This document shows, piece by piece, positions 1,052 through 55,904 of a stretch of 64,000 nt of DNA. Position numbers and translations under genes: made by a program. The first letter of the stretch is position 1, and each line of letters begins with the position of its first letter. A model generated the notes under the pieces. The model was not told where the DNA came from. It did no database searches and worked only from the letters and a program-made list of their open reading frames with translations. The stretch comes from Macrostomum lignano. Taxonomy: Eukaryota. The DNA lies in assembly GCA_002269645.1 (NCBI GenBank), contig NIVC01000446.1:124001-188000 (forward strand). The letters run 5' to 3'.

Positions 1052-3418
1052 ATGGACATGTCAGACGATGACAGCGCCGCCATTAGTCACACAGGCTCCG
1101 AGGATCCCGAGATTAGCGGAGACGAAGATCAACACGCTGGAGGTTCTAGTAGTAGAGGGCCGGCCGATGAGAATCAGACTAGTCGATTAGAATCTGCCGC
1201 TTTCCAATTGCATCTGCCGCATTCGGAGCTGTCTGACAATGAGGCAGAGCATTTCCCGGACGTGAGCACTGGTAGCGCGGCTACTCGACGTGCATTTGTC
1301 TACATTCGAAATCGTATCTTAGCCGCTTGGCTGGACGCTCCGTTGAAGCAATTAACCTTAGCTGAAGCGCAGAAGCAGTTGGAATTAACTAGCGACGCTG
1401 ATAAAGAGCTCTGCCATCGTATTTTAGTATTTCTAGAGCGTCACGGTTTTGTTAATTTTGGCGTCTTCGAACGATTGGAACGTCCGCTGACTTGGCTAGG
1501 AAATGATGGTGATAAACAGCCATTCCGTGTGCTGGTTATCGGGGCTGGCATTGCCGGCTTAGCCGCCGCTCGACAACTCGAGTATTTTGGTTGCCAGGTG
1601 CGAGATTGCGTTTTAATTCTAATTAAATTTTAATGATTGATTGGTTTGGAAGGCGTGAGGAGTTAGACGAGTGAGGAGGGTTAGACAGGAATGAGGAGGG
1701 TTAGACAGGAGTGAGGAGGGTTAGACAGGAGTGAGGAGGGTTAGACAGGAGTGAGGATGGTTAGACAGGAGTGAGGAGGGTTAGACAGGAATGAGGAGGG
1801 TTAGACAGGAGTGAGGAGGGTTAGACAGGAGTGAGGATGGTTAGACAGGAGTGAGGAGAGTTAGACAGGAGTGAGGAGGGTTAGACAGGAGTGAGGATGG
1901 TTAGACAGGAGTGAGGAGAGTTAGACAGGAGTGAGGAGGGTTAGACAGGAGTGAGGATGGTTAGACAGGAGTGAGGAGGGTTAGACAGGAGTGAGGAGGG
2001 TTAGACAGGAGTGAGGATGGTTAGACAGGAGTGAGGAGGGTTAGACAGGAGTGAGGAGGGCCGAGGGGTTAGACAGGTGTGAGGAGGGTTAGACAGGTGT
2101 GAGGAGGGTTAGACAGGCGTGAGGAGGGCCGAGGGGTTAGACAGGTGTGAGAAGGGTTAGACAGGTGTGAGAAGGGTTAGACAGGTGTGAGAAGGGTTAG
2201 ACAGGTGTGAGAAGGGTTAGACAGGTGTGAGGAGGGTTAGACAGGAGTGAGGAGGGTTAGACAGGTGTGAGGAGGGTTAGACAGGAGTGAGGATGGTTAG
2301 ACAGGAGTGAGGAGGGTTAGACAGGAGTGAGGAGGGTTAGACAGGAGTGAGGAGGGTTAGACAGGAGCGAGGAGGGTTAGACAGGAGTGGGTAGGGTTAG
2401 ACAGGTGTGAGGAGGGGTTAGACAGGTGTGAGTAGAGATTAGGCAGGTTTAAGGAGGGTTAGACAGGCGTGAGGAGGGCCGAGGGGTTAGACAGGTGTGA
2501 AGAGGGTTAGACAGGTGTGAAGAGGGTTAGACAGGTGTGAAGAGGGTTAGACAGGTGTGAGGAGGGTTAGACAGGTGTGAGGAGGGGTTAGACAGGTGTG
2601 AGTAGAGATTAGACAGGTTTAAGGAGGGTTAGACAGGCGTGAGGAGGGCCGAGGGGTTAGACAGGTGTGAGGAGGGTTAGACAGGTGTGAATAGGGGGAT
2701 GTAGACTGGGGACAAATTAATAAGTTTAAATATGTATACTCGTAGTAGTTGACAAGCATTGGGTACCATTTAAAACAATATTACTCTCTATAACCGAGGG
2801 AGTGCATTTACAACTACCGGTGTTAGTAACAACCCGTTGATATTCTTCAGGTGACGGTTCTAGAAGCGCGCAGTCGCGTTGGCGGTCGAATTTGCACTTT
2901 TCGCAAAGGCCCGTACATTGGCGACCTGGGCGCTATGGTAATCACCGGCCTAGGCGGCAATCCGTTAACAGTGTGCTCTAAACAGATTGATATAGAATTG
3001 TTTAAACTGAAAACCAAGTGCCCGCTGTTTGACGACACCGGCGTGCTGATCGATTCGGAGCGGGACGCCGTGATCGAGCGCGAGTTCAATCGGTTGCTAG
3101 AAGCGGCCGCTTATCTCACCCACGAGCGTCGTATTGAAGAGACTGCCGGCCGGCCGGACTGCGAGAAAATGAGCCTAGGGCAGGCGGTTGACCTGCTGGT
3201 GCAGATGCAGGAGCAGCGGTGTCGGGAACAGCAGCTGGTGCATTTGCAGAAGATGCTGGATTTGCAGGTTAGCGATAGGAATTGTGCTTTTACTCTTGCT
3301 CCTGTCTGTCTGTGTCTGTCTGTCTGCCTGTCTGTCTGTCTGTCTGTCTGTGTCGGTCTGTCTGTCTGTCTGTGTCGATCTGCCTGTCCGTCTGTGTCTG
3401 TCTGTCTGTCTGTCTGCC

Positions 3419-3463
<45 letters not shown>

Positions 3464-3647
3464 GTCTGTCTTACTGTCTTTCTTTTTTTCGTCTGTCTGT
3501 CTGTCTGTCTGTCTGTCTGCTTGCCTGCCTGTCTGTCTGTCTGTCTGTCTGCCTGCCTGCCTGCCTGTCTGTCTGTCTGTCTGTGTCTGTCTGTCTCGCT
3601 TTCTGTCTTTCTTTTTTCGTCTGTCTGTCTGTCTGTCTGTCTGTCTT

Positions 3648-3729
<82 letters not shown>

Positions 3730-6700
3730 CATCAAGCCGCCGGTCCAGCCGCCCAAAACCCAACCGCCAACACATTCCAGGACAGCTTAGCCAGCATACT
3801 CAAAGACATGGAGACAGCCAAAACCGAAATCGCTCGCCGTCACGCAGCTTGGCTGGCCCAAGACGCTGCCGCAGGCGGTGACTCTTCTTCGTCTGGTGCC
3901 GATGCCGCCGCCGCCGCCTCTGCCAGCAGTGACTCCTCAAACGCATTCCTGCAGCTGTTCGATCGCCGTTCGAAACAGCGCGATCTGTCTCAGGCGCTGC
4001 TGGAATTTCAACGGCTCAAAGCGAAAGGCGAAGAGCTGCAGGACAGCCTGGACGCTTTGGACGCCGAGCCGCCATCTGGAGTCTACCTGGGCCCGTCAGA
4101 CTCGCACATACTCAATTGGCACAAGGCTAATTTGGAATTTGCCAATGCAGCACCGTTGGACAAGCTGTCCCTGCGGCACTGGGATCAGGACGATGAGAAT
4201 GAGTTCTCTGGGCCGCATCTCACTGTGAGAGTTCCGTCTGCTTTATTTTTATATCTTTAGCATTCTATTTTCCACTCTATCCTATTTTCCATCAGATCTA
4301 ACTTCCATTCTATCCTATCTTCCTCTCTATCCTTCTTTTTTTCACTCTATCTATCTTCCACTCTATCCTATTTTCCATTCTATCCTATCTTCCACTCAAT
4401 CCTATCTTCCACTCTATCCTATTTTCCACTCTATCCTTCTATCTTCCACTGTATCCTTCTATCTTCCATTCTATCCTTCTATCTTCCACTCTATTCATCT
4501 ATCCTCCACTCTATCCTATCTTCCACTCTATCCTATTTTCCATTTTATCTATCTTCCACTCTATCCTACCTTCCACTCTATCCTATCTTTCACTCTATCC
4601 TTCTATCTTTCACTCTATCCTATTTTCCACTCTATCCTTGTAACTTCCACTCTATCTTATTTTCCACTCAATCCTATCTTTCATTCTACTTCTATTCTTG
4701 TATAATCCGTTTTATAGCTCTTTCTTACTCTATTCTCACACCTGACATATTTTGTTATATCTTTAACTGTTTATTTAATTTCTCTTCGCAAACTTCTACA
4801 AGTCCATGTGTCCCCTGCCTGTTCAGGTCCGCAACGGCTATTCCTGCCTGCCCCTGGCCCTAGCCGAAGGCCTCAACGATCTCAGATTGGACACCAGCGT
4901 GCAACGCATCGAATGGGACGCGGAGGGCGCCACGGTGACCTTCAAACGTACCGGCGAAGATCCGGCCACTCAACGAGCTGACGCGGTGATCTGCACCCTA
5001 CCGCTTGGCGTGCTCAAGCATCAACACGAGGATTTGTTCAGTCCGCCGTTGCCCGAGTGGAAAATCGACTCAATTAATCGGCTTGGCTATGGAGTGTTAA
5101 ACAAAGTACTTTTAGCGTTTGATAAGTACTTTTGGGATCCACAGCTTAATCTATTTGGCTACGTGCCAAATAGCGTTGACGGTCGGGGCGAGTTTTTCCT
5201 ATTCTGGAGCGTCTACAAGGCGCCTGTGCTGCTGGCTCTGGTTAGTGGCGAGTCTGCCGAGCTCATTGAAAAGGTGAGTTCACCTGATTATTGCTTGACA
5301 ACAATTCTCTTTATTTACTGCCTGACCCACTGTTATAGCTGTTCCCTGACCTTCATTTAGTCACAGCCTGACCCACTGTTCTAGCTGTTCCCTGGCCTTC
5401 ATTTAGTCACAGCCTGACCCACTGTTATAGCTGTTCCCTGACCTTCATTTAGTCACAGCCTGACCCACTGTTATAGCTGTTCCCTGACCTTTATTTAGTC
5501 ACAGCCTGACCCACTGTTATAGCTGTTCCCTGACCTTCATTTAATCACAGCCTGACTCACTGTTAAAGCTGTTCCCTGACCTTTATTTAGTCACAGCCTG
5601 ACCCACTGTTATAGCTGTTCCCTGACCTTCATTTAGTCACAGCCTGACTCACTGTTAAAGCTGTTCCCTGACCTTTATTTAGTCACAGCCTGACCCACTG
5701 TTATAGCTGTTCCCTGACCTTCATTTAGTCACAGCCTGACCCACTGTTAAAGCTGTTCCCTGACCTTCATTTAATCACAGCCTGACCCACTGTTAAAGCT
5801 GTTCCCTGACCTTTATTTAGTCACAGCCTGACCCACTGTTATAGCTGTTCCCTGACCTTCATTTAGTCACAGCCTGACCCACTGTTATAGCTGTTCCCTG
5901 ACCTTCATTTAGTCACAGCCTGACCCACTGTTATAGCTGTTCCCTGACCTTTATTTAGTCACAGCCTGACCCACTGTTATAGCTGTTCCCTGACCTTCAT
6001 TTAATCACAGCCTGACTCACTGTTAAAGCTGTTCCCTGACCTTTATTTAGTCACAGCCTGACCCACTGTTATAGCTGTTCCCTGACCTTCATTTAGTCAC
6101 AGCCTGACCCACTGTTATAGCTGTTCCCTGACCTTCATTTACTCACTGCCTGACCCACTGTTATAGCTGTTCCCTGACCTTCATTTACTCACTGCCTGAC
6201 CCACTGTTAAAGCTGTTCCCTGACCTTCATTTACTCACTGCCTGACCCACTGTTATAGCTGTTCCCTGACCTTCATTTAGTCACAGCCTGACCCACTGTT
6301 ATAGCTGTTCCCTGACCTTCATTTAGTCACAGCCTGACCCACTGTTATAGCTGTTCCCTGACCTTTATTTAGTCACAGCCTGACCCACTGTTATAGCTGT
6401 TCCCTGACCTTCATTTAATCACAGCCTGACTCACTGTTAAAGCTGTTCCCTGACCTTTATTTAGTCACAGCCTGACCCACTGTTATAGCTGTTCCCTGAC
6501 CTTCATTTAGTCACAGCCTGACCCACTGTTATAGCTGTTCCCTGACCTTCATTTACTCACTGCCTGACCCACTGTTATAGCTGTTCCCTGACCTTCATTT
6601 ACTCACTGCCTGACCCACTGTTAAAGCTGTTCCCTGACCTTCATTTACTCACTGCCTGACCCACTGTTATAGCTGTTCCCTGACCTTCATTTACTCACTG

Positions 6701-7233
6701 CCTGACTCACTTCTATTCGTATCTAATGGCTTCCTGACCCACCTTTATTACCTCTCTCTCTTACCACTCTCCCCCATCTCCTCATCCAACCGCAGGCCTC
6801 AGACGAAGCCATAGTGGAGCGCGCCCTGTCTGTCCTGGGCAAAATTTTTGGCTCAGCGCCAACGCCCAAGCACTCGGTGGTCACCCGCTGGCGCTCCGAC
6901 CCGTACAGCCGCGGCTCCTATTCCTACGTTGCCGTCGGGGCTTCCGGCGACGATTACGACGCTCTGTCCCGGCCGGTTGCCGCCACGCCGGACGCGGCCG
7001 ACGCGGACGCCGGCGCCGCAGTTGCCCGCCTGCCAGCCCGGCTGCTATTCGCTGGCGAGCACACCAACCGGCAGTATCCGGCCACCGTGCATGGCGCTTT
7101 GTTAAGCGGATTTCGCGAGGCTGGCCGACTGTGCGATCTGTTCGGCAATAGCTTCGGCAGCGGGGAAGACGGTAGCGCGGTTGGAGCTGGGTCTGCTGCT
7201 CCTGCTGCTGCTGGTACCGGAAGCGCCGAGTGA
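1052..7233 (+). CDS. KDM1A: Lysine-specific histone demethylase 1 (LSD1), 5 exons, ~763 aa
   Basis: Exons 1052-1597, 2851-3267, 3781-4224, 4827-5273, 6796-7233, all GT-AG and phase 0. SWIRM region, FAD motif VLVIGAGIAGLAAA..EARSRVGGR, Tower domain, WHKANLEFANA..WDQDD, catalytic Lys in GYGVLNKV, and FAGEHT..YPATVHGALLSG. AATAAA at ~7258. Confidence 0.96.
1655..2690. repeat. 20-bp minisatellite, LSD1 intron 1
   Basis: GAGGAGGGTTAGACAGGAGT tandem array. Confidence 0.97.
3301..3729. repeat. (TCTG)n microsatellite, LSD1 intron 2
   Basis: Directly visible. Confidence 0.97.
4262..4700. repeat. Degenerate ~17-bp minisatellite, LSD1 intron 3
   Basis: CTATCCTATCTTCCACT variants. Confidence 0.85.
5320..6710. 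repeat. 46-bp minisatellite, LSD1 intron 4
   Basis: AGTCACAGCCTGACCCACTGTTATAGCTGTTCCCTGACCTTCATTT, about 30 copies. Confidence 0.97.
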
Positions 7234-8696: not shown

Positions 8697-9260
8697 GCCA
8701 GCCTCCCAGAGTGTCAGTTGTTGGGCCAGCCTCCCAGAGTGTCAGTTGCTGAGCCAGCCTCCCAGAGTGTCAGTTGCTGGACCAGCCTCCCAGAGTGTCA
8801 GTTGCTGGGCCCGCCTCTCAGAGTGTCAGTTGCTGGACCAGCCTCCCAGATCCTCAGTTGCTGGGTCAGCCTTCCAGATCCTCAGTTGCTGGGTCAGCCT
8901 TCCAGATCCTCAGTTGCTTGACCAGCCTCCCAAATCCTCAGTTGCTGGGCCAGCCTCCCAGATCCTCAGTTGCTGGACCAGCCTCCCAGATCCTCAGTTG
9001 CTGGGCCACCAGCCTCCCAGATATTCAATTGCTGGGCCAGCCTTCCAGATTCTCAGTTGGTGGGCCAGCCTCCCAGATCCTCAGTTGCTGGACCAGCCTT
9101 CCAGATCCTCAGTTGCTGGACCAGCCTTCCAGATCCTCAGTTGCTGCGCCAGCCTCCCAGATCCTCAGTTGCTGGACCAGCCTTCCAGATCCTCAGTTGC
9201 TGGACCAGCCTTCCAGATCCTCAGTTTCTGGGCCAGCCTCCCAGATCCTCAGTTGCTGAG
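8697..9260. repeat. 28-bp minisatellite upstream of MRPL57 (same family as 45222-46650)
   Basis: CCAGCCTCCCAGATCCTCAGTTGCTGGG. Confidence 0.95.
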
Positions 9261-31444: not shown

Positions 31445-32482
31445 TACAGGCACTCATTTTAGCGCCGCAGGCACTCATTTTAGCGCCGCAGGCACTCATT
31501 TTAGCGCCGCAGGCACTCATTTTAGCGCCACAGGAACTCATTCTAGCGCCGCGGGCACTCATTTTAGCGCCGCAGGCACTCATTCTAGCGCCGCAGGCAC
31601 TCATTTTAGCGCCGCAGGCACTCATTTTCGCGCCGCAGGCACTCATTTTAGCGCCGCAGGCACTCATTTTAACGCCACAGGCACTCATTTTAACGCCACA
31701 GGCACTCATTTTAGCGCCGCAGGCACTCATTTTAGCGCCGCAGGCACTCATTTTAGCGCCGCAAGCACTCTTTTAGCGCCACAGGCACTCATTTTAGCGC
31801 CGCAGGCACTCATTTTAGCGCCACAGGCACTCATTTTAGCGTCACAGGCACTCATTTTAGCGCCGCAGGCACTCATTTTAGCGCCGCAGGCACTCATTCT
31901 AGCGCCGCAGGCACTCATTTTAGCGCCGCAGGCACTCATTCTAGCGCCGCAGGCACTCATTTTAGCGCCACAGGCACTCATTTTAGCGTCACAGGCACTC
32001 ATTTTAGCGCCGCAGGCACTCATTTTAGCGCCACAGGCACTCATTTTAGCGCCGCAGGCAATCATTCTAGCGCCGCAGGCACTCATTTTAGCGCCACAGG
32101 CACTCATTTTAGCGCCGCAGGCACTCATTCTAGCGCCGCAGGCACTCATTTTAGCGCCACAGGCACTCATTCTAGCGTCACAGGCACTCATTTTAGCGCC
32201 GCAGGCACTCATTTTAGCGCCACAGGCACTCATTTTAGCGCCGCAGGCACTCATTCTAGCGCCGCAGGCACTCATTTTAGCGCCACAGGCACTCATTTTA
32301 GCGTCACAGGCACTCATTTTAGCGCCGCAGGCACTCATTTTAGCGCCACAGGCACTCATTTTAGCGCCGCAGGCACTCATTTTAACGCCACAGGCACTCA
32401 TTTTAGCGCCACAGGCACTCATTTTAGCGCCGCAGGCACTCACTTTGGCGCCGCAGGCACTCATTTCAGCGCCGCAGGCGCT
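31445..32482. repeat. 21-bp minisatellite
   Basis: CAGGCACTCATTTTAGCGCCG, about 49 copies. Confidence 0.97.
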
Positions 32483-40556: not shown

Positions 40557-43500
40557 ATGGCTGAATGGCGTGGAAATTTTGGCATTGACTCAGATGAAGA
40601 GGCAAATCTAGATGAGGCTGGCAGAGGTGATGACGGGCCTGGCTCCAGGTCCCAGCCCAGTCGCGACGGCCTTATAGTTCTAATCGATTGTCGGGATTCA
40701 ATGCGTCAACAGGCAAACAGCGCCAATCAGACGCTAATTAAAATGTCATTCAAATGCGCTAAAACTGTGCTGAAACGCAAGGCGCTAGCATCCGACAGAG
40801 ATCTGGTAGCTGTAGTTCTGTTCGGCTGCGGCAAGTGTTCTAACCCGGATATGCGACACGTGCTGACCCTGCAGCCGCTGGAACAGCCGGGCGCTGACCG
40901 GATTAAACAGTTGGGCCACCTAGCTGAACTGGATGCGGCAGCATTAGAGACTGAGATTGGCAGATCGGCTCCTGAGGTTTGCAAATAATTTGTTGATTTT
41001 AAATTTTAAAATGGTTTTAGCGCTGCAGGCGAGATCTTAGCGCCACAAAGGTGTGATTTTAGATTTTAGATTTTAGGTGTCAAATGAGATTTTAGTGCCA
41101 TAGGTGAGATTTTAGTGCCAGAGGTGAGATTTTAGTGCCACAGGTGAGATTTTAGTGCCATAGGTGAGATTTTAGTGCCAGAGGTGAGATTTTAGTGCCA
41201 CAGGTGAGATTTTAGTGCCGCAGGTGAGATTTTAGTGCCACAGGTGAGATTTTAGTGCCGCAGGTAAGATTTTAGTGCCACAGGTGAGATTTTAGTGCCA
41301 CAGGTGAGATTTTAGTGCCACAGGTGAGATTTTTGTGCCGCAGGTTAGGTTTTAGTGCCACAGGTGAGATTTTAGTGCCACAGGTGAGATTTTAGTGCCA
41401 CAGGTGAGATTTTAGTGCCACAGGTGAGATTTTTGTGCCGCAGGTTAGGTTTTAGTGCCATAGGTAGATTTTTGTGCCGCAGGTGAGATTTTAGTGCCAT
41501 AGGTAGATTTTAGCGCCGCAAGTGAGATTTTAGTGCCGCAGGTGAAATTTTAGTGCCGCAGGTAAGATTTTAGTGCTGCAGGTGAGATTTTAGTGCCACA
41601 GGTGAGAGTTTAGTGTGCCGCAGGTGAGATTTTAGTGCCACAGGTGAGAGTTTAGTGTGCCGCAGGTGAGATTTTAGTGCCACAGGTGAGAGTTTAGCAG
41701 GTGAGATTTTAGTGCCATAGGTAGATTTTAGCGCCGCAAGTGAGATTTTAGTGCCGCAGGTGAAATTTTAGTGCCGCAGGTAAGATTTTAGTGCTGCAGG
41801 TGAGATTTTAGTGCCACAGGTGAGAATTTAGTGTGCCGCAGGTGAGATTTTAGTGCCACAGGTGAGAGTTTAGTGTGCCGCAGGTGAGATTTTAGTGCCA
41901 CAGGTGAGAGTTTAGCAGGTGAGATTTTAGTGCCGCAGATGAGCTATAAGTTTCCAGACCATATTCCAGGTGTCAATCTCGGATGCAATCTGGACCTGTC
42001 AGAGCATATTCAGCGCCTGCACTGTTAGACTAGGCTATCGCAGAATCTTCATGCTTACTAACGACGATAATCCTCACGATGGCGACCAGCACAAGCGTGC
42101 TCAGTTGAGAACTAAAATTCTGGACTTGCAGCAGACTGAAATTGAACTGCTGATTATACCGCTGCTACCGACTGCTTCAGGGGCCAATCTGTTCGACTGT
42201 AGGAGATTCTATTTTGATAACCTGCTGCCGGAGAATGAAAGGTATGAAATTATAATTGCGGTTATCGCCCTATCACCTAGCAATTCCCCATGAGAATCGC
42301 CCTATCACCTATGAGAATCGCCCCATCACCTATGAGAATCGCCCCATCACCTATGAGAATCGCCAATCACCTAGCAATTCCCCATGAGAATCGCCAATCA
42401 GCTAGCAATTCCCCATGAGAATCGCCAATCATCTAGCAGTTCCCCATGAGAATCGCCAATCACCTAGCAATTCCCTTTGAGAATCGCCAATCACCTAGCA
42501 GTTCCCCATGAGAATCGCCAATCACCTAGCAATTCCCTTTGAGAATCGCTAATCACCTAGCAATTCCCTTTGAGAATCGCCAATCACCTAGCAATTCCCT
42601 TTGAGAATCGCCAATCACCTAGCAATTCCCTTTGAGAATCGCCAATCACCTAGCAATTCCCTTTGAGAATCGCCAATCACCTAGCAATTCCCTTTGAGAA
42701 TCGCCAATCACCTAGCAATTCCCTTTGAGAATCGCCAATCACCTAGCAATTCCCTTTGAGAATCGCCAATCACCTAGCAATTCCCTTTGAAAATCGTCCC
42801 CTCACCTAGAAATTCCCTTTGAGAATCGCCAATCACCTAGCAATTCCCTTTGAAAATCGTCCCCTCACCTAGCAATTCCCTTTGAGAATCGCCAATCACC
42901 TAGCAATTCCCTTTCAGAATCGCCAATCACCTAGCAATTCCCTTTGAGAATCGCCAATCACCTAGCAATTCCCCATGAGAATCGCCCTATCACCTATGAG
43001 AATCGCCCCATCACCTATGAGAATCGCCCCATCACCTATGAGAATCGCCAATCACCTAGCAATTCCCTTTGAGAATCGCCAATCACCTAGCAATTCCCTT
43101 TCAGAATCGCCAATCACCTAGCAATTCCCTTTGAGAATCGCCAATCACCTAGCAATTCCCTTTGAGAATCGCCAATCACCTAGCAATTCCCTTTGAGAAT
43201 CGCCAATCACCTAGCAATTCCCTTTGAGAATCGCCAATCACCTAGCAATTCCCTTTCAGAATCGCCAATCACCTAGCAATTCCCTTTGAGAATCGCTAAT
43301 CACCTAGCAATTCCCTTTGAGAATCGTCCCCTCACCTAGCAATCATACCCGTTATGCTCTCAAAAATACCCTCCCCCCGCCGAACCCTCCCGACAGACCA
43401 GAACAGGGCAGCGACCTACTCGCCGAACTGCTGCAAAATGTCGACAGCAAAGCCGCCATTCGTCGAGCTCAGGTTCGTCTGAGCATTCGCCTGGGCCCTG

Positions 43501-43922
43501 GCATGTCCTTGCCAGTCTCTGTGTACAATCTGACTCGCCGGTGCACAGTGCCAACCGCCGAGCGGCTGCACCGAGCCACTAACGAGCGGGTGAAGCGGAC
43601 TACTAGGAAGTTCCTGACGGACACAGCTGAGGTGCTGATGCCGACCGATCTGAAGAAGGCCGCCGTGGTTAATGGTGAGCGATAGGTCTGCCTCTTCCTG
43701 TCTGTCTGTCTCTTCCTGTCTGTCTGTCTCTTCCTGTCTGTCTGTCTCTTCCTGTCTGTCTGTCTCTTCCTGTCTGTCTGTCTCTTCCTGTCTGTCTGTC
43801 TCTTCCTGTCTGTCTGTCTCTTCCTGTCTGTCTGTGTCTGTCTCTTCCTGTCTGTCTGTCTGTCTTTTTGTCTGTCTATCTATCCATCCATCTATCTGTC
43901 TATCTTTCTATCTATCTATCTG

Positions 43923-43989
<67 letters not shown>

Positions 43990-43990
43990 G

Positions 43991-44045
<55 letters not shown>

Positions 44046-44046
44046 G

Positions 44047-44081
<35 letters not shown>

Positions 44082-44107
44082 GTCTATCTATCTATCTATC
44101 TGTCTAA

Positions 44108-44173
<66 letters not shown>

Positions 44174-44226
44174 GTCTATCTATCTATCTATCTATCTATC
44201 TGTCTGTCTATCTATCTATCTATCTG

Positions 44227-44276
<50 letters not shown>

Positions 44277-44285
44277 CATCTATCC

Positions 44286-44316
<31 letters not shown>

Positions 44317-44378
44317 CATCTATCCATCTATCCATCTATCTATCTATCTATCCATCTATCTATCTATCTATCTGTCTG

Positions 44379-44428
<50 letters not shown>

Positions 44429-47025
44429 CATCTATCTATCTGTCTATCTATCTATCTATCTATCTATCCATCTATCTATCTGTCTATCTATCTATCTATC
44501 TATCTATCTATCCATCCATCTATCTTTCTATTTATCTATCTATCTATCTATCTCCCACCCGCAGGCAAGAAGGTGCTATTTGAGCAGGAGGAAGTGAAGC
44601 AGATGCGCCGCCTAGCCGAGACGGGCCTGAGCCTTATCGCTTTCTATCCCATGTCCGCCATGAAGTCGCACTACCACATTGGCCCAGCCTCCTTCATCTA
44701 TCCGGACGAAGTTGCCGCCCAGGGCAGCGTCTGCCTGTTCACTGGCCTACTTAAGGCCTGCCTAGACAAAAACCGATTTGCTCTGTGTTCTTACACGCCC
44801 AGATCCAACGCTGTCACCAGCCTGGTGGCTCTGCTGCCCCAGGCCGAGGTGCGCGACCCAGACACTGGGGCCCAGTCGGTGCCGCCCGGCTTCCACCTGG
44901 TTCACCTTCCGTTTGCTGACGATTTTCGTAAATTAACATTCGATCAAGAAGCCGACGAGTTACGGAAATGCCAGGCCGCTGAGGAGGAGCTGAAATTGGC
45001 TGGCGCTCTAATTGAGCGGACCGTGGCGGACAAGTGGAGCCCGGAGATGCACTGCAACCCGGCGCTGCAGGCCTACCAGTCGCAGCTGGAGGCCATCGCT
45101 CTGGACAAGGCCGAGCCCCGTCAGTTCACGGATACCACACGGATGAGTGAGAGAGACATCGCCCACTCTGCTAAGGCTGTGGATCGCTTTCTAAAGGTCA
45201 GAGTGATTTGCTGCTTGTTGGTCACCAGCCTTTAAGATTCTCAGTTGCTGTGCCAGCCTCCCAGATCCTCAGTTGCTGGGCCAGCCTCCCAGATCATCAG
45301 TTGCTGGGCCACTAGCCTCCTAGATCCTCAGTTGCTGGGCCACTAGCCTCCTAGATCCTCAGTTGCTGGGCCACTAGCCTCCTAGATCCTCAGTTGCTGG
45401 GCCAGCCTCCAGGTCCTCCGTTTCTGGGCCACCAGCCTCCCAGATCCTCAGTTGCTGGGCCAGCCTCCCAGATCCTCAGTTGCTGGGCCAGCCTCCCAGA
45501 TCCTCAGTTGCTGGGCCACTAGCCTCCTAGATCCTCAGTTGCTGGGCCACTAGCCTCCTAGATCCTCAGTTGCTGGGCCAGCCTCCAGATCCTCCGTTTC
45601 TGGGCCACCAGCCTCCCAGATCCTCAGTTGCTGGGCCAGCCTCCCAGATCCTCAGTTGCTGGGCCAGCCTCCCAGATCCTCAGTTGCTGGGCCAGCCTCC
45701 CAGATCCTCAGTTGCTGGGCCAGCCTCCCAGATCCTCAGTTGCTGGGCCACCAGCCTCCCAGATCCTCAGTTGCTGGGCCAGCCTCCCAGATCCTCAGTT
45801 GCTGGGCCAGCCTCCCAGATCCTCAGTTGCTGGGCCAGCCTCCCAGATCATCAGTTGCTGGGCCACTAGCCTCCTAGATCCTCAGTTGCTGGGCCACTAG
45901 CCTCCTAGATCCTCAGTTGCTGGGCCACTAGCCTCCTAGATCCTCAGTTGCTGGGCCAGCCTCCAGATCCTCCGTTTCTGGGCCACCAGCCTCCCAGATC
46001 CTCAGTTGCTGGGCCAGCCTCCAGATCCTCCGTTTCTGGGCCACCAGCCTCCCAGATCCTCAGTTGCTGGGCCAGCCTCCCAGATCCTCAGTTGCTGGGC
46101 CACTAGCCTCCTAGATCCTCAGTTGCTGGGCCACTAGCCTCCTAGATCCTCAGTTGCTGGGCCAGCCTCCAGATCCTCCGTTTCTGGGCCACCAGCCTCC
46201 CAGATCCTCAGTTGCTGGGCCAGCCTCCCAGATCCTCAGTTGCTGGGCCAGCCTCCCAGATCCTCAGTTGCTGGGCCAGCCTCCCAGATCCTCAGTTGCT
46301 GGGCCAGCCTCCCAGATCCTCAGTTGCTGGGCCACCAGCCTCCCAGATCCTCAGTTGCTGGGCCAGCCTCCCAGATCCTCAGTTGCTGGGCCAGCCTCCC
46401 AGATCCTCAGTTGCTGGGCCAGCCTCCCAGATCCTCAGTTGCTGGGCCAGCCTCCCAGATCCTCAGTTGCTGGGCCAGCCTCCCAGATCCTCAGTTGCTG
46501 GGCCAGCCTCCCAGATCCTCAGTTGCTGGGCCACCAGCCTCCCAGATCCTCAGTTGCTGGGCCAGCCTCCCAGATCCTCAGTTGCTGGGCCAGCCTTCCA
46601 GATCCTCAGTTGCTGGGCCAGCCTCCCAGATCCTCAGTTGCTGGGCCACCATCGCCGCCCTTTCAGTCGCATCTTTATTAAGCAAAATTTTAATTAGTAT
46701 ATAATGCGAGTGATAAAAATCGCACGTCTCTACTTACAGTACGAAAGTTAGTGTAAGTAGCTATTCAAAAACGCAAATGTATTATGGAATTATTCAGGCA
46801 TTCGACATTCGCAAACGCAGCGAAGGCGGCATCGGCAATGCGGCAGCTAAACGGGCCAGAGTTATTGACGCAGCCAACGACATCGAGGCGGAGGCCCGGG
46901 CTGGCCAGCTTGCTAAACTGACTGTCCCAGTGCTGAAAGAGGCTGCCAATGGGTTGCGTTTAAAACCGGCTAGCCAACGTAAACAGGATCTCATCAATGC
47001 TATTAATGCTCATTTCGGCCTGTGA
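40557..47025 (+). CDS. XRCC6: Ku70, 5 exons, ~609 aa
   Basis: Exons 40557-40976, 41970-42241, 43397-43674, 44565-45196, 46798-47025 join in frame. vWA domain ([31 protein letters not shown]), beta-barrel ([26 protein letters not shown]), NPALQ, and C-terminal SAP domain ([17 protein letters not shown]). Confidence 0.96.
41025..41940. repeat. 20-bp minisatellite, Ku70 intron 1
   Basis: CAGGTGAGATTTTAGTGCCA. Confidence 0.96.
42268..43342. repeat. 31-bp minisatellite, Ku70 intron 2
   Basis: GAGAATCGCCAATCACCTAGCAATTCCCTTT. Confidence 0.96.
43685..44552. repeat. (TCTG)n/(TCTA)n microsatellite, Ku70 intron 3
   Basis: Directly visible. Confidence 0.97.
45222..46650. repeat. 28-bp minisatellite, Ku70 intron 4
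   Basis: CCAGCCTCCCAGATCCTCAGTTGCTGGG with +3-bp variants. Confidence 0.97.
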
Positions 47026-47369
47026 GCAATCATATTTTGATTGACTGATCTGACAATTTAAGTATGCATCTACCGTATTTGAATAGTCCTATCTAGTTTT
47101 TTATTCAGCACCGTTCACTGACTAAATAGTGAATCACATTCTATCTTAGTTTGTGTAGTTATTTTTTATTTTTTATTCACCTAGCTCGTACAAGTTGCGT
47201 ACTTTTTCGATACTGTATACCAAAATACACTCTTATTGTGACGTTTGTTCTTTATTGCTAAATTGATTCCTGTTTTCTTATTTAGGTAATGAATTAAAAA
47301 AATCAGTAATCCAAGTTAGCATTGGCAAGATTTTTGGCATTGTACCTGTCAGTTGTACCTGTTCAGGTG

Positions 47370-47371
47370 TA

Positions 47372-47408
<37 letters not shown>

Positions 47409-47411
47409 GCC

Positions 47412-47468
<57 letters not shown>

Positions 47469-47495
47469 TAGTATCTGTCTGTCTGTCTGTCTGCC

Positions 47496-47539
<44 letters not shown>

Positions 47540-47655
47540 CTTCTGTCTGTCTGTCTGTCTGTCCTTCTGTCTGTCTGTCTGTCTGTATGTCTGTCTGTCT
47601 GTCTGTCTGTCTGTCTTCATTCTGTCTGTCTATATGTCTGTCTGTCTGTCTGCTA
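47370..47655. repeat. (TCTG)n microsatellite between Ku70 and DDX11
   Basis: Directly visible. Confidence 0.96.
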
Positions 47656-47987: not shown

Positions 47988-50900
47988 ATGACGGCCGAAA
48001 AGATTGATGAATTCTTTAATGATGTCGAGGGAGACGAACTTTTTGCTTCCATTGATCTAGATGCGGTGATCCAGTGTGCAACAGCAAAGCAACCTGTTGA
48101 GACAAGCACTGCAACAGAGAAGACTCCTGTTGGTATGAGAACTGCAACAGAGAAGACTCCTGTTGGTATGAGAACTGCAACAGAGAAGACTCCTGTTGGT
48201 ATGAGAACTGCAACAGAGAAGACTCCTGTTGGTATGAGAACTGCAACAGAGAAGACTCCTGTTGGTATGAGAACTGCAACAGAGAAGACTCCTGTTGGTA
48301 TGAGAACTGCAACAGAGAAGACTCCTGTTGGTATGAGAACTGCAACAGAGAAGACTCCTGTTGGTATGAGAACTGCAACAGAGAAGACTCCTGTTGGTAT
48401 GAGAACTGCAACAGAGAAGACTCCTGTTGGTATGAGAACTGCAACAGAGAAGACTCCTGTTGGTATGAGAACTGCAACAGAGAAGACTCCTGTTGGTATG
48501 AAAACTGCAACAGAGAAGACTCCTGTTGGTATGAGAACTGCAACAGAGAAGACTCCTGTTGGTATGAGAACTGCAACAGAGAAGACTCCTGTTGGTATGA
48601 GAACTGCAACAGAGAAGACTCCTGTTGGTATGAGAACTGCAACAGAGAAGACTCCTGTTGGTATGAGAACTGCAACAGAGAAGACTCCTGTTGGTATGAG
48701 AACTGCAACAGAGAAGACTCCTGTTGGTATGAGAACTGCAACAGAGAAGACTCCTGTTGGTATGAGAACTGCAACAGAGAAGACTCCTGTTGGTATGAGA
48801 ACTGCAACAGAGAAGACTCCTGTTGGTATGAGAACTGCAACAGAGAAGACTCCTGTTGGTATGAGAACTGCAACAGAGAAGACTCCTGTTGAAGAAAGAA
48901 GTGCAACGGACAAGAAAATAGCTGTGTTAAAAACAGATACTGATCAGTCACAATCGTTGGTACCGAACTCAACCCGTCGTGAGTTCGATTTCCCTTTCGA
49001 GCCTTATCCAATCCAATTGCAATTGATGCGTCGGCTTCACGCAACCCTTTCTGGTGGTCAACGAGCAGGAATTTTTGAGTCGCCAACCGGAACAGGAAAA
49101 AGTCTCAGCTTGTTGTGCGCTTGTCTTACCTGGCTTAACGAAGAGTATGAGAGGTGAAAATTTTCAGTTGCTTGAAGTACTGTAATAGCCTTAAGAAATA
49201 ATGGCTAGTATCTTGAAAGCAAGTTTTATTTAACGAAGATCAAGACAACTTGAAATTATACAGAAAAATTCCAAAACTGGTTGGCGATCACTAAATATAT
49301 ACACTCTGAAACATTGAAAAGTTTCCACCCTAGCGCGCGCGAAGGGTCAACGTTTTGGTGGGTGGAGATATTCGTGGTTTGAGCCATAGACAAATATATA
49401 ATCCGGATTCGAACGAAGCAAAGGAACAGCAAAGAAACAAAGTACGCGAGCATGGGTGACAACTTGCCCAGAACAGGGTCAGTAACGCGTATAGCAGCCA
49501 CGTGCGTGCAGCAGAGCGCTCACTCTCCGGGGCATCCCCAGAACCAGGCGTCGCAGAAAATCTTGCGGTAGTTGTTGCCATGCAGTAGACAGTGATTCGC
49601 GCAGTTGGGCAACGTTTTGCGGCGGATTGTCGTGCCGAATGGAGCGCTTCAGGTAATCCCAAACGTGCTCTATAGGATTCATGTCCGGTGATCGGGACGG
49701 CCAGCGCAAGGTTCGCAGGTGCAGCAGCTCCTTCAGATGCGCCACAGCGGCTTTGCGATGCGGTGGGGCGTTTTTCGTCTTGGAGGACGCTGTTCCCACG
49801 CCACCACATGAAGCATCAATGACACAAGTGCGTGTTGACGAAATCATCAATCGTCTATGGCACAAGTCCGGCGACAAAAACCAGTTTTGAAACTTTAAAT
49901 ATACACGGCTGGCGAGAGGTTGGAAACTTCAATGTTGCTGAGTTGCTGAGAGTATTCTAGGAAGTTGATATGAAGTAACTAGAACAATAAAAACAACAAA
50001 TTTTGGAACAACTTTGTGTTGTTAACGATGTACCTCTAAAAATAAAGGTTGTAGTTTTAGTTATCCTACTCGTATTGAAAAGTGGTTGAAAGGCACAGTA
50101 AGCACACCAGCTGAGAATGTCTATGGCCAAAAGACCACTAACTCAGAGTGTGCTAAACGCGTTTCTCGCCCACCGAGACTTGGTGCTATGTTAAATACAA
50201 CACTAACATGGATTGACTGTCTCGTACGTATCTCGACTTAAAAAAATTGCCGCAAGATTACCCCTATGAGTACTCACTCTCAAAGTGCTACTGCAAAATT
50301 GGTAGCTTTTGAAGAATTTTTTAAGCCTGTCAATAGTTTAAAAATGCCCGCGACTAGACAATTCAATTGCGGAAACTTAATCATGATTTATTATTGGGCG
50401 AGAAGTTACATGTACACTGTACAGAAAGTATTCGAGTGAGTTTAACTGGCGTGAGTCAACCCCGAGGCTATCTCGTACCCCCCCCCCCCCCAATTACGTA
50501 TTGTCGCTAGAGACGCTAGCTATTTCTTACTGTTATTGTAATAAGCACTGATAAGTTGATTATTATTCCAAGATAATAGCCACTAGTTCTTGGATTTTAA
50601 ACTTCTCGATACAAATGGTTTGAGTTTTATTAAAAAGTTTAATAATCCTTCTTTAAATGCTCGCAGACAGAAGCTCAGCTTGTCAAGTTTAACTGCGGAA
50701 TTGAATCCGGATTCCGTGGAATCCAGCTCCACCGCTTCGCCCGACGCTTGGATCGCAGAGTTTGCGGCCAAGCGCCAGCGTCAGCGCCAAAACGATGCCG
50801 AACGCGCCAAATTAGAAGCGCGTGAGAAAGCTTTGCAAAAATTGGAGAAAATTCGATCTGGCGAATCGGACGAAGAAGCTGACTTGGAAGATCGCATTGA

Positions 50901-53900
50901 CGAAGAAATTGACAGTGTCGAAGAATCGACTGCCGTAGAGCCGACAAAGATTTTGTTTGCCTCGAGGACTCATTCGCAGTTGTCGCAAATTCGTAAGGAG
51001 TTTAGTCGTACGGTGCATGCCAATAAGCTGTCGGCTGTTAGTCTGGCAGCTCGCAACTGTTTATGCGTCAATTCGGATGTTACGGCTCTTGGCGCCTCGG
51101 CTCTTATTAATGAGAGATGCTTGGAATTGAGAAGGAAATCGTCCGGAAACAAGGCTGGTGCGTGAAAGCTTAAGCTTGTCAATTAACGGGGAAGCGACTT
51201 TCCTTCATGGTTTTGCTTTATTAAAGTAACCGAGTCAAAAGGGTGTCTATTTATTTGAAGTCTTCCTTTTTAAAGTGGACAAAGACTAGATTCTTCGGAT
51301 TCGCTAAATTGACAAAGACTTGATGTTTCATACATGTCTTTTCTTCCTAAAAGTGACAAACAGCTCATTCTTCATTCCAATTCTTTATGAAAAGATCTAC
51401 CTTTATGACAAAGCCGTGATGCTTCACACCAGTCCTACTCCCTGAGTGACAAAGACCTAATGTTTCAAACCAGTCCTACCCCCATAGAGTGACAAAGACC
51501 TAATGCTTCACACCAGTCCTACTCCCATAGAGTGACAAAGACCTGTTGCTTCATTCCTATTCATTATAACCACTAATTCAAGTAGTAATGCTAGATTTCC
51601 GGCTTATTTTTTTTCTTCCTCACAGAACCCGGCAAAGAAAATCGAGGTGACAAATCGCCTCCCGCTAAACGAGCTCGCGTCGCTAAAGACGACTGCGGCT
51701 GCGGCGGTGGCGGCGGGTGTCCCTATTATCGACGCTCCGCCATAGACAGTCTGGCTCGCGAGGCTCTACGGGGCCCCCCGTTAGACATTGAAGATCTGGC
51801 CAGATTGGGCCGCGAGCGGCGCGCCTGTCCATATTACGCAGCGCGCCGGGCCGCTCCGCTAGCCCAGCTGTTGTTGCTACCCTACCAGACTTTGCTACAT
51901 CGGGGCACAAGAGCAGCAACCGGATTAAATCTGCGCGGTCACGTCCTTGTGATTGACGAGGCGCACAACCTATTAGAGACTCTAGCGGGTGTGCACAGCG
52001 TCTGTTTGACTGTCGGACATCTGCGCTTGGCTGTCGATCAATTAGCCGAATACGAGGCGCGATATCTTAGTCGTTTAGCACCTCAGAATCTGCTGATGGT
52101 GCGGCGTGCTCGACTGGTTGCTAAGCAGTTGTTGGCCGCTGTAGATGGTGACGTTTCTAAAACTGCCGCTCGTACTTCCTGTTCGACTGTTGTTTCTTCC
52201 GGTTCTCCTGATCAAAGTCTTGCTTTTGCTAAAGGTACTCCCAGTTCTAAAGTTGGCACTTCCTGTTCAAATATCGGCACTTATGATTCTAAAATCGGCA
52301 TTTTCGGCTCTAAAGTTGGTACTTCCGGCTCTAAAGTTGGTGCTTCCGGTTCAAATATCGGCACTTCCGGTTCTAAAGTAGGCATTTCCGGCTCTAAAGT
52401 TGGTGCTTTCGGTTTAAATATCGGCACTTCCGGTTCTAAAGTAGGCATTTCCGGCTCTAAAGTTGGTGCTTCCGGTTCAAATATCGGCACTTCCAGTTCT
52501 TCTACTACAGCCGACTCCACTTGCGTCAAGGTATTTGGCGTCACGGAGTTCCACCTGCACTGCGGCATCGACAATGTAGACGTGCCAGATCTGCTGCGCC
52601 GATTGAAAGAGGCTCGCCTGTCGAGGAAAGTCGGCGATGGTGGTGCTGGAGGTTCAAAAAAGGGCGTCGTAGTAGGCGGCGGTAGCGGCTCTGGGGAAGG
52701 CAAACAGGCGCCTTTATTGCAAATGCAGGTTGGTTATTTACCACAATCAGTATGGATCGATCAGCCTTCGATACCACTTGTCATTATTGGGTCCTAATCC
52801 CAGCTTTTATATCAGATCTACCGACTATATTCCAATGAGATGGCCAATTCTGTCACGACTAATAGGAACAACCAATATCTAGGCATGTCCCTATAATCAG
52901 CTTATGATCAAATCCTCTGCTTATGACCCTACAGTCAGCTTATGACCCAATCCTCCGCTTATGACCAAATCCTCTGCTTATGAAACTACAGTCAGCTTAT
53001 GACCCAATCCTCAGTTTATGACCCGATCCTCAGCTTATGACCCAAGTCCTCAACTTATGGCCAAAATCCTCAGTTTATGACTTAAATCCTCAACTTATGA
53101 CCCAAATCCTCAACTTATGACCCAAATCCTCAGCTTATGACCTAATAATCTATTTATAACCTAAATCCTCAACTTATGACCCAATAATCATTTTATGACC
53201 TAAATCCTGTGCTTATGACCCAATTCCCTAGCTTTTGACCTAAATCCTCAGCTTGTGACCTAAATCCTCAGCTTGTGACCCAATAATCAGTTTATGGCCA
53301 AATAATCTACTTATGACCCAATAATGAGCCCATGAACAACTCTCCAATTTCTTCTATTCAACAACCAGGCCTTCCTATCCGCTCTGCTCAGCGCAGACGA
53401 TGACGGGCGAGTCCTGCTTCAGCCGGGCGCCCACCTGAAGTACCTCCTACTGAATCCCGCTTCGCATTTCGCCGAAGTTGTTCAACAATCGCGTTGCGTC
53501 ATCCTTGCCGGCGGTACAATGCGACCGGTGGATGATCTCATCACCCAGCTGTTCGTGCCCGCTGGCTGCAGTCAGGTCTGTGGGGATTTTTCATTTCTAT
53601 TGGCTGGTGAATATTAGTGTCTGCGTTGATAGAGTGAAGGTCTGTGAGATAGAGATTAAGTGAGTGAGAATATGGTCTATGTTACTGGGATGTGAACTTA
53701 AGCTCCAGAATGGAGCTCGAATGAGGCCAGCAGACCAAACCGACTGGAATCGATAGCTTGTCAGTCCAGATGACTACAAACGCTGACACATCCCACCCGA
53801 GTCTATTCTACTGGGTCGTGGGGAAGAAATGGGATAAATGGGGATTTCATGTGAACTTTAGGCTCTAGAGTTTATCTCAAGGACGCGCAGTGTTATGCAG

Positions 53901-55904
53901 CCCTTAAGCCATGTTAAGGATAGTGATTATTTTGGAAACCAAGAAGCGAGTCAATGGCCCTCACATTTCAGTTTTTGGTTTAGGCCGCGACTTTTTTACG
54001 GTCTAATTGCCTAAGACCATAAGGTGCCATAAGCGCCACTCGGGCTGGCGGGTGGGGAAGCGGTCGCCCCCCCCCCCCACCTTAGGAGGCGACCCGCAAA
54101 AATGGTTCGGGAGGACCAATCGAATTTTCGCAAAAATCCAAGCCCACCTTACTCCACCCTCCCTCTGCATCTTTAAAATCAGCGTCTGGCATAAAATCGA
54201 TGACATGAGGATTGACTCAGGTTGAAATCCATTCGTTAAGAGTAAGGGCCAAATGTCCAGACGGTTATAGTCATCTGGTCCGACAAGTTATCGATTCCAG
54301 TCGGTTTGGTCTGCTGGCCTCATTCGAGCTCCATTCTGGAGCTTCAGTTCACATCCCCTTTGTACTGAATTAAAACTTGCACTTCTAACTTTTCTTAATC
54401 AACTAATCCAGGTAGAGCAGTTCTCATGCGGTCACGTGGTTGACAAGCGGAACGTGCTAGCGTTAGTTGTCGATCGCTACGACAGCAGCAGCAACGCTGG
54501 ACACCAGTTGTGCTTCACTCAGTCTGCCAAAAACCAGCCAGATCTATTAACAGCCGCAGGCGACGCCCTAGTCGACCTGTTGTCGGCCGTCCCATCCGGA
54601 GCCGTTGTGTTCTTCCCGTCGCACGATTGGGAATCGGCCGTCCATAGTCGCTGGCAGTCGGACGGCCGGTTGGCTCGTCTGTGCCACCGGAAGCGCCTGT
54701 TCCGGGAGCCTCGGGCTGCTGCCGAGGTCGAACCGCTGTTGCAGCGTTACCAGACTGCCGCCGTGACAGCTGGCGGCGCCATCCTCTTTGCCGTGGTTGG
54801 CGGCCGACTGTCCGAGGGTATCAATTTTGCTGACGACTTTGGTCGGTGCGTTGTTATGCTGGGGATGCCCTATCCTAATAAGGGCTCGCCTGAGCTGATT
54901 GAGACTATGGCCTATCTGTCTGACAGGTGGGTAGTTGGTTGATTGATTCGATTCGGGATGATTTTCATTGCTTTATCCTCATTATTGATTTTGCTTTCTT
55001 TATTATTTTACCACTCTTATCCTTCGCCCTCCCTCTTCCCTCACCCTCTCCCTCTCCTCACCCTCTCTCCTCTCGCCACCTCCCTCTCTCCCCTCACCCT
55101 CTCCTCCCTCCCCACTCTCACATCTCTTACCTCTTCTCTTAGCCTCCCTCCCTCCCCTCTACTCTCGCATCCTTTCTTTTATCTCCCATCCCTTCTCCCC
55201 TTACTCTCCTCCATATCTCCTTCCTCCCACTTCTCTCCATTGCTTCGCTTAGTTTTGCTTTGCTATTTATCCTCATTTCCACCCAGTTTCTACCGCTGCG
55301 ATTGGTTACAGGTTGGTCACTGGGGATTTGTCATAGTTGCTAGCATCTGTTACAAGAATTGCACACGAATGGAGATTGTAGCATAATGGTTAGAGCGTCG
55401 GACTCTTGACTGAAAGGTCGGGGGTTCGATTCTCGATTTTCACTTGGAACAATTTGTGTCCTTGAGCAAGAGACACTTAACTCTGCATTGCTTCAGTTCA
55501 CGCAGCTGTAAAATGGGTGCCAGATTTAGCTGGGGTAATTGAGAGTGTGCAGCTGAGCTGTCGGTTGTACATCTGGCCCAATTAGGGCAGGTGTAATAAA
55601 AAAATACACTAATCTGAAATCACCAACAACCCCCCCCCTCCCCAGATTCGGTCCGAACGCCGGTCGCGCCCACTACGAGAGCCTGTGCATGCGAGCTGTC
55701 AATCAGTGCATCGGTCGGGCTATTCGTCACAAATCAGATTACGCAGCCATAGTATTGCTGGATAGTCGCTACTCTCGGCCAGCTGTCCGAGCTAAACTGC
55801 CCGATTGGATTGGCCAATCGCTGTTGCCAAGGCCGCTGAATTCGAGTCTGGCTGTGAAAACATTGACCGAATTCTTTGCCGCTAAGCAGGCTGAGAGTGT
55901 TTGA
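47988..55904 (+). CDS. DDX11: Fe-S DNA helicase DDX11/ChlR1
   Basis: Exons 47988-49153, 50667-51157, 51626-52728, 53369-53575, 54412-54926, 55646-55904. Q motif FPFEPYPIQ, Walker [19 protein letters not shown], four Fe-S Cys (LCVN, INERC, CPYY twice), [35 protein letters not shown]. 1246 aa with both repeat arrays, 906 aa if both are spliced out. Confidence 0.95.
48108..48890 (+). repeat. 33-bp in-frame tandem repeat ([11 protein letters not shown]; 23 full units plus a partial) in DDX11 exon 1
   Basis: ACTGCAACAGAGAAGACTCCTGTTGGTATGAGA; near-identical copies. Confidence 0.98.
49479..49877 (-). mobile_element. Tc1/mariner transposase C-terminal remnant in DDX11 intron 1
   Basis: [40 protein letters not shown] is the Tc1 signature. 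The QDNAPPH motif appears frameshifted and the N-terminus is absent. Confidence 0.85.
51345..51560. repeat. ~43-bp tandem repeat, DDX11 intron 2
   Basis: GACAAAGACCTAATGCTTCACACCAGTCCTACTCCCATAGAGT variants. Confidence 0.8.
52235..52500 (+). repeat. 21-bp in-frame repeat ([14 protein letters not shown]) in DDX11 exon 3
   Basis: GGCACTTCCGGTTCTAAAGTT variants. Confidence 0.92.
52895..53335. repeat. ~20-bp minisatellite, DDX11 intron 3
   Basis: CTTATGACCCAAATCCTCAG. Confidence 0.9.
53687..54357. mobile_element. Non-autonomous TIR element (MITE) in DDX11 intron 4
   Basis: 53687-53776 and 54268-54357 are 90-bp inverted repeats with only a few mismatches; no TSD recognised. Confidence 0.8.
55371..55595 (+). 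mobile_element. tRNA-derived SINE family 2 with CORE-like central domain
   Basis: A box at 55379, B box GGTTCGATTCT at 55423, then TGTGTCCTTGAGCAAG..CACTTAAC..CAGCTGTAAAATGGG. Confidence 0.75.

Follow-up and report, generated by a model that had tools for sequence, protein, structure and literature searches.

Is a near-perfect tandem repeat in the first exon of a helicase gene translated into protein, or is it an intron in the course of formation? The question is raised by a 33-bp array at positions 48108-48891 of a 64,000-nt stretch of the genome of the flatworm Macrostomum lignano (assembly GCA_002269645.1, Mlig_3_7, contig NIVC01000446.1, positions 124,001 to 188,000; hereafter the window). 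The array lies in a DDX11/Chl1-like gene, and a sequence-only reading had pointed out that each unit carries both a donor-like and an acceptor-like splice motif. Our analysis indicates that the array is most probably a translated coding minisatellite, that is, a variable number tandem repeat (VNTR) at the protein level, in exon 1 of this gene.

The array has a period of 33 bp, 23.8 copies, 99% matches and no indels according to Tandem Repeats Finder. Unit by unit, it consists of 23 near-identical copies of ACTGCAACAGAGAAGACTCCTGTTGGTATGAGA (48108-48866, plus strand), each with TTG|GTATGA, AACAG|AG and an in-frame ATG, and a 24th unit (48867-48899, plus strand) that ends in GAAGAAAGA where the others end in GGTATGAGA; unit 12 differs by a single G>A change (R>K). 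The 24th, EER-type unit has no GT and is identical to the main unit in 28 of 33 positions, all five differences being clustered (GAAGAA versus GGTATG). On both sides, the array is bordered by older degenerate proto-units on the same strand and in register, at 48075-48107 (21/33 identity) and 48900-48932 (19/33), whereas the maximum among 2047 other 33-mers from the exons of the gene is 18/33. Since the flanks match the unit in register above this null maximum, the array grew from older degenerate 11-codon repeats. The sequence-only reading had described the flanks in the same way and had proposed a recent expansion of coding sequence, which is supported by the 99% identity of the units and by the whole-unit differences among three copies of the locus described below. 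The period is divisible by three, so that each gain or loss of units keeps the frame, and the array shares the frame of the coding sequence on either side. The open reading frame (ORF) at 47988-49157, whose ATG is located two codons past a stop, is open through every unit into the helicase motifs. Each unit encodes one T-P dipeptide and has a net charge of +1; any role for the dipeptide or the charge is speculation.

The entire array is annotated as coding sequence. The gene called after Ku70 in this contig corresponds to window positions 47988-55904 with a 1246-aa product, and the deposited protein PAA82830.1 (BOX15_Mlig021250g1, 1246 aa) aligns to six exons in the window with zero mismatches in a spliced alignment. 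Exon 1 (47988-49153, plus strand, exact alignment) contains the start codon, the whole array and the first helicase motifs. The annotation of M. lignano was not made ab initio but by mapping RNA-seq reads with STAR, assembling them with StringTie and merging the result with a de novo transcriptome by TACO (PMC5730564). Five introns are removed in the PAA82830.1 model and several of them hold minisatellites, thus arrays as such do not block intron calling. An exhaustive HMMER search with the neighboring Ku70 exon had found a 99% identical protein, whose cluster is composed of M. lignano proteins from GCA_002269645.1. For comparison, three loci (L001, L002 and L003) were taken from the contigs encoding the three Ku70 copies; L002 (contig NIVC01000446.1) is the window base for base (26505/26505), the window coordinate being the L002 coordinate plus 30520. 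No junction inside the array is present in the deposited models of any of the three copies, and the L001 model rebuilt with the array kept (433 aa, with a stop at the called end) was found by exact look-up to be PAA53174.1. The deposited RNA-seq-guided models are therefore indirect evidence that the array is kept in the mature mRNA of all three copies. An insert of about 260 repeat residues in a DDX11-type helicase, one of the two outcomes foreseen from the sequence, is what the deposited model translates.

The other outcome foreseen was an intron forming now, with a ladder of isoforms as its product. Each GT has its G (48133+33n) in codon position 2, making the donors phase 1, and the first base after each CAG (48118+33n, the last at 48877) is in the same codon position, making the acceptors phase 1. 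The observation that both motifs of every unit share this phase is thus confirmed by the codon positions; there are 23 donors and 24 acceptors, and any pairing preserves the frame. Exitrons are in-frame introns within protein-coding exons. In an exitron or nascent intron of this kind, some or most transcripts would join a GTATGA donor to a later CAG acceptor, so that 33n+18 nt would be removed in frame; 22 such lengths are possible, the shortest being 51 nt and each of the others longer by a further 33 nt, up to 744 nt. These would give up to 22 isoform lengths in 11-residue steps, and the largest excision, 48133-48876, was correctly calculated as 744 nt. We consider such splicing unlikely.

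Position weight matrices were built on 13 introns of the window, nine derived from deposited Ku70 and DDX11 proteins by exact alignment and the remaining four, of LSD1, from alignment to human KDM1A; real sites were scored leave-one-out. The array splice signals are not comparable with those of the real introns. The donor TTG|GTATGAG, with 3.5 bits, is at the bottom of the range of real donors (3.1-10.6 bits), and 33 of 343 exonic GT decoys score at least as high. The acceptor, with -6.3 bits, scores under all 12 real acceptors (-0.2 to 11.8 bits), and 276 of 408 exonic AG decoys (68%) do at least as well. The lack of a good pyrimidine tract, noticed earlier, is borne out by a pyrimidine content of 40% in the 20 nt upstream of the acceptor; real acceptors in the reference set all end with CAG. 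Real donors have G at -1 in 12 of 13 cases and AG before GT in 10 of 13. In most of them position -2 is A, and position -3 is C, A or G in all, whereas the array donor has T at both -2 and -3. Among shuffled units, 16% hold an in-frame donor/acceptor pair at least as good as that of the array. The splice-like motifs of the array are no better than chance or exonic background, and the acceptor is poor. Moreover, the deposited model does not use the perfect donor motif gtc|GTGAGT that occurs at 48979, within conserved coding sequence of exon 1, hence donor-like motifs in exons are routinely ignored here. The 20-mer GACTCCTGTTGAGAAGACTC, expected at a spliced junction, is absent from the genomic copies. 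Two other candidate signals in exon 1 were considered and rejected. An ordinary intron with both sites outside the array, from GCG|GTGATC at 48066 to gatcag|TCA at 48948 (both phase 0), is contradicted by the deposited protein, which contains that sequence; as for a donor of exon 1 at 49145 (aga|GTATGA), the site is not conserved in L001, where it reads AATATGA, and gag|GTGAAA at 49154 is the donor found in the exact alignment.

The neopolyploid M. lignano DV1 contains three subgenomes (S, L1 and L2) at approximately 1.4-2.4% single-nucleotide divergence (PMC10733133), and the unique sequence of the three loci, 97-100% identical with colinear flanks, fits this picture. The array contains 23 GMR-type units and one EER-type unit in the window (with one R>K change in unit 12), 12 and one in L001 (four units being P-A-G-M-R and one S-A-G-M-R), and 18 and six in L003 (one unit being S-A-G-M-R). 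The totals are 24, 13 and 24 units, every length difference corresponds to whole units, and exon 1 is 803 nt long in the shortest copy. The EER-type unit, which has no GT, was itself expanded to six copies in L003, thus expansion is not tied to the splice-like motif. All substitutions in the array change amino acids (V>A, P>S, R>K, T>S) and none creates a stop. No indels of 1-2 nt and no partial-unit indels were found in the array across the three copies, as opposed to 6-10 gap openings per 1.5 kb between the copies in intron 1. This is mild evidence for frame preservation, although the array may be just too young to have gathered such changes. The array is real, and its copy number varies between the three subgenome copies. 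The proposal of an intron now forming with its ladder of isoforms is not upheld: there is no junction in the models, the acceptor is below the real ones, the pair of motifs is within chance, and units without GT expand as well.

That the array or its copy number could be an artefact of long-read assembly, an outcome that the sequence-only reading had also named, is barely credible. The Mlig_3_7 assembly is based on PacBio reads of a repeat-rich neopolyploid genome and has 36% of its length in chimeric scaffolds (PMC10733133). It is also odd that exon 1 is exactly 1166 nt with 24 units in both the window (47988-49153) and L003 (16463-17628) despite the different unit composition, 23+1 versus 18+6; this equality may be a coincidence or may reflect gene conversion or a constraint on total length. 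However, three independent contigs carry the array with distinct internal variants, the flanks are colinear and 97-100% identical, and proteins predicted from the independent, older ML2 assembly contain the array as well.

Another question is where translation begins. Translation must start in or before the array, as no ATG occurs from its end to FPFEPYPIQ, the first conserved helicase motif. ATG 47988 is the only start codon upstream of the array; therefore, provided that the mRNA starts upstream of it, the array would be translated. An mRNA that begins within the array, by an internal start or by spliced-leader trans-splicing to one of the 24 CAG acceptors, with translation from any of 23 ATGs in frame (encoding the M of GMR), would yield partial translation of the repeat. 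We find this very unlikely, even though each unit offers an in-frame ATG, an acceptor alone suffices for trans-splicing, 38.8% of M. lignano genes are trans-spliced (PMC5730564) and Ku70 is located 960 nt upstream of the gene in the same orientation. The deposited coding sequences of all three copies begin with the upstream ATG, the peptide of 40 N-terminal codons is 99-100% identical among the copies, the array acceptor is weak, and a far better acceptor-like site, tttatttttttcatatag|AGG, was recognized by eye approximately 55 nt upstream of ATG 47988. The latter, a strong acceptor-like sequence, could be a candidate spliced-leader trans-splice site. The interval that separates the start of DDX11 from the end region of Ku70 (46798-47022) contains a (TGTC)n microsatellite at 47368-47652.

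Several observations count against the translated minisatellite. The unit is open in two of the three plus-strand frames, hence the openness of the ORF proves little. Within the same window, the (CTGT)n array at 3302-3729, which belongs to an LSD1 intron, has no stop in the frame of the two adjacent exons (a 476-codon ORF at 2830-4257, with CLSV repeated about 100 times), so the continuity of an ORF across an array is not evidence of coding. The long N-terminal extension has no support from conservation, as orthologues have 10-50 residues there. The evidence for retention consists of deposited models, and two of the three models run through real introns (the 433-aa and 942-aa products), which indicates that unspliced RNA or multi-mapping between the copies affected transcript assembly at these loci. 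A splice with both sites in a perfect repeat would give junction reads mapping to up to about 250 equivalent places; short-read pipelines easily miss such reads, and a StringTie/TACO model could thus miss a minor isoform. The weight matrix is a blunt test as splice signals here are loose: the donors of the window include GTGAGT, GTGCGT, GTTTGC, GTCTGT and GTTGGT. The earlier description of GTATGA as a consensus donor is right insofar as it serves as a real donor once, in Ku70 intron 2 (aag|GTATGA at 42242), but it is not the local consensus, most donors starting with GTG. The L001 variant CTG|GTATGA reaches 7.5 bits. Finally, minisatellites fill nearly all of the real introns nearby. Overall, the deposited models are good evidence for the main isoform and weak evidence against minor ones. 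It is doubtful, in our estimation, that a fraction of DDX11 transcripts uses the donors and acceptors in the array, the VNTR doubling as a polymorphic multi-site exitron. Were this true, an intron would be seen at its birth out of a coding tandem repeat, with a ladder of N-terminal lengths in which a change of copy number between subgenomes alters the set of isoforms.

The translated minisatellite could have arisen as follows. The starting point would be three or four degenerate copies of an 11-codon repeat, an older series within a lineage-specific N-terminal extension. Two neighboring units would have had 25 identical bases in common, and replication slippage or unequal exchange between them may have amplified the 33-bp unit. 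Presumably the mRNA starts upstream of ATG 47988, with the array translated into about 260 residues of low-complexity, probably disordered 11-residue repeats. These would form a tolerated flexible spacer between the 40-residue acidic N-terminal peptide and the helicase core, and the exact array length would be close to neutral. A precedent within the same gene is provided by the second in-frame minisatellite, located in exon 3 between conserved segments. The array looks like an ordinary coding VNTR rather than a newborn intron, in a minisatellite-rich genome with 15% of its DNA in simple or tandem repeats (PMC5730564).

The identity of the host gene was addressed by domain and similarity searches. 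Pfam domains DEAD_2 (PF06733) and Helicase_C_2 (PF13307) match exons 2, 3, 5 and 6, the TIGR00604 rad3 model scores 455 bits against a cut-off of 247, and Walker A GTGKS in exon 1 and the DEAH box VIDEAHNL in exon 3 can be read from the translation. Judging by the domains, the rad3 model and these two motifs, the protein is an XPD/Rad3-like helicase. The DDX11/CHL1 label is likely, not proven. The flatworm protein has the Q motif and a 25-residue DDX11-type segment, DDX11 orthologues align across exons 1-6, and named database matches to the N- and C-terminal exons are DDX11 or chromosome transmission fidelity protein 1; the conserved start of the helicase core (48981-49153, plus strand, ending with LTWLNEEYE) has 58-61% identity to DDX11/CHL1 in tblastn and BLASTP. 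Among solved structures, FANCJ is the best match (2e-56), ahead of XPD and CHL1 (3e-42). Word-indexed protein searches with exons 1 and 5 returned distant DDX11/CHL1 relatives only, with neither a protein carrying the repeat nor an M. lignano protein among them; a similar search with an LSD1 exon yielded partial proteins only. The best matches to the N-terminal part came from oomycetes and the helicase is divergent, but a protist source was rejected in view of the similarity of the LSD1 exons to human KDM1A.

The N-terminal part of the protein stands apart from the rest. It begins with a unique acidic peptide of 29 residues in the ORF listing (47988-48074, plus strand) and has about 330 residues before the first motif, 264 of them in the repeat. 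None of the orthologues examined, with their 10-50 residues in this place, has a similar N-terminus, hence the extension is lineage-specific. In a single-sequence AlphaFold2 model, which is weak evidence, the repeats have a predicted local distance difference test (pLDDT) score of about 30 and no secondary structure, so that the insert is probably disordered; weak helices are predicted in residues 3-12, 17-20 and 24-32 (pLDDT about 50). Our literature search found no description of this DDX11-exon array in Macrostomum.

The array has features in common with several known systems. Intragenic coding minisatellites are well known from mucin-type VNTRs. They were also described in yeast cell-wall genes (Verstrepen et al. 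2005, cited as ref. 29 in PMC2395259). The flatworm array resembles both in the period divisible by three, near-identical units, whole-unit copy changes and low-complexity, length-tolerant, probably disordered sequence. However, its host is a nuclear DNA helicase whereas theirs are surface or secreted proteins, its length has no associated phenotype, and its variation is between subgenome copies in one inbred line, not between individuals. Like exitrons, it has GT...AG in a coding exon, a removable length divisible by three and a disordered region; unlike them, it is kept in the deposited models, and its acceptor is weaker than the exonic background. In the Cryptococcus gene CNN00420, introns were gained by repeat expansion, but the repeated unit already held a working intron, which the expansion copied (PMC2395259). 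A tandem repeat expanded within a gene in both cases, in Cryptococcus changing gene structure within a population, whereas the flatworm unit is coding sequence annotated without an intron. In the Rogers model, introns are gained when a segment with AGGT is duplicated in tandem, as in the case of potato RdRp (PMC4974935). Tandem duplication of exonic sequence supplies GT and AG here as well, but the 33-bp unit has no AGGT, therefore donor-to-acceptor excision leaves a 15-nt scar (an extra E-K-T-P-V) and does not restore the ancestral sequence. Finally, the protein resembles DDX11/Chl1 of the XPD/Rad3-like iron-sulfur helicases in all the domains and motifs listed above, and differs from the orthologues examined in the length of its N-terminus.

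Taken alone, the array matters little: it is one more coding VNTR, undescribed although already present in a public record of a hypothetical protein. It may serve as a length marker by which the three subgenome copies of this locus in M. lignano can be told apart, and it is a clean test case of whether splice-like motifs in a perfect coding repeat are ever used, given loose splice signals and introns filled with minisatellites. It also carries a warning: whether an array is exon or intron in this genome can be decided neither by an ORF nor by GT/AG motifs, given that the LSD1 (CTGT)n intron can be read through in frame and that perfect donor motifs number about 43 in one Ku70 intron.

The genomic context is more striking than the array itself: minisatellites fill almost every neighboring intron, and their lengths differ between the subgenomes. 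Tandem Repeats Finder reports 97 rows in the 64-kb window. LSD1 introns 1598-2850, 3268-~3790, 4225-4826 and 5274-6795 and Ku70 introns 40977-41969, 42242-43396, 43675-44564 and 45197-46797 are largely filled by mini- or microsatellites, each with a different unit; the LSD1 exons are 55-65% identical to human KDM1A, the tower domain included. The Ku70 gene is 6505, 4578 and 5552 nt long in its three copies because array lengths differ between the subgenome copies. We found no paper describing intronic minisatellites in Macrostomum in our literature search. The intronic arrays show no general enrichment of splice-like motifs; only the 20-mers of Ku70 intron 1 and DDX11 intron 3 stand out. In the former (41085-41943), the unit TGAGATTTTAGTGCCACAGG gives approximately 43 tandem copies of CAG|GTGAGA, each scoring 11.3 bits, above all 13 annotated donors, while the annotated donor of the intron is the weak gag|GTTTGC at 40977. 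These copies could be either inert decoys or candidate recursive splice sites.

The remaining part of the DDX11-like gene, on the plus strand, was delineated by alignment of PAA82830.1. Intron 1 (49154-50666, gag|GTGAAA ... tcgcag|ACA, exact alignment) is among the few introns here without a minisatellite; it contains a remnant of a Tc1/mariner-type transposase on the minus strand (49479-49877, Pfam DDE_3, E = 1.6e-8). It is followed by exon 2 (50667-51157), exon 3 (51626-52728), exon 4 (53369-53575), exon 5 with Helicase_C_2 (54412-54926) and exon 6 with the stop codon (55646-55904, the protein alignment extending to 55901), the last two also being matched by Pfam. The second coding minisatellite, at 52237-52500 on the plus strand in the annotated coding sequence of exon 3, has a 21/63-bp period, GTSGSKV-like heptads and 72-91% matches, and is flanked by conserved DDX11 segments. 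It has 12.6 copies in both the window and L001, and by this equal copy number is older and more stable than the 33-mer; the best splice-like sites of its unit are no better than those in shuffles. Near L001 position 19826 (window ~52693), one G fewer in a GGGG run of exon 3 shifts the last approximately 12 codons; either this subgenome copy is truly frameshifted or the long-read assembly contains a homopolymer error. UniProt entries A0A1I8G3F4 and A0A1I8G9P5, derived from the ML2 assembly, start inside the 33-bp array in a wrong frame and later switch to the right one, likely due to a 1-nt assembly error; thus the public entries for this gene are inconsistent.

Some repeat units recur at distant places in the window. 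The 28-bp unit GCCAGCCTCCCAGATCCTCAGTTGCTGG forms two arrays, at 8697-9258 near an unannotated ORF and at 45235-46648 in Ku70 intron 4; comparison of the flanks of the two arrays revealed no similarity and no sign of a carrier transposon. Three further arrays, at 31447, 41085 and 62133, share an ATTTTAG-GCC core.

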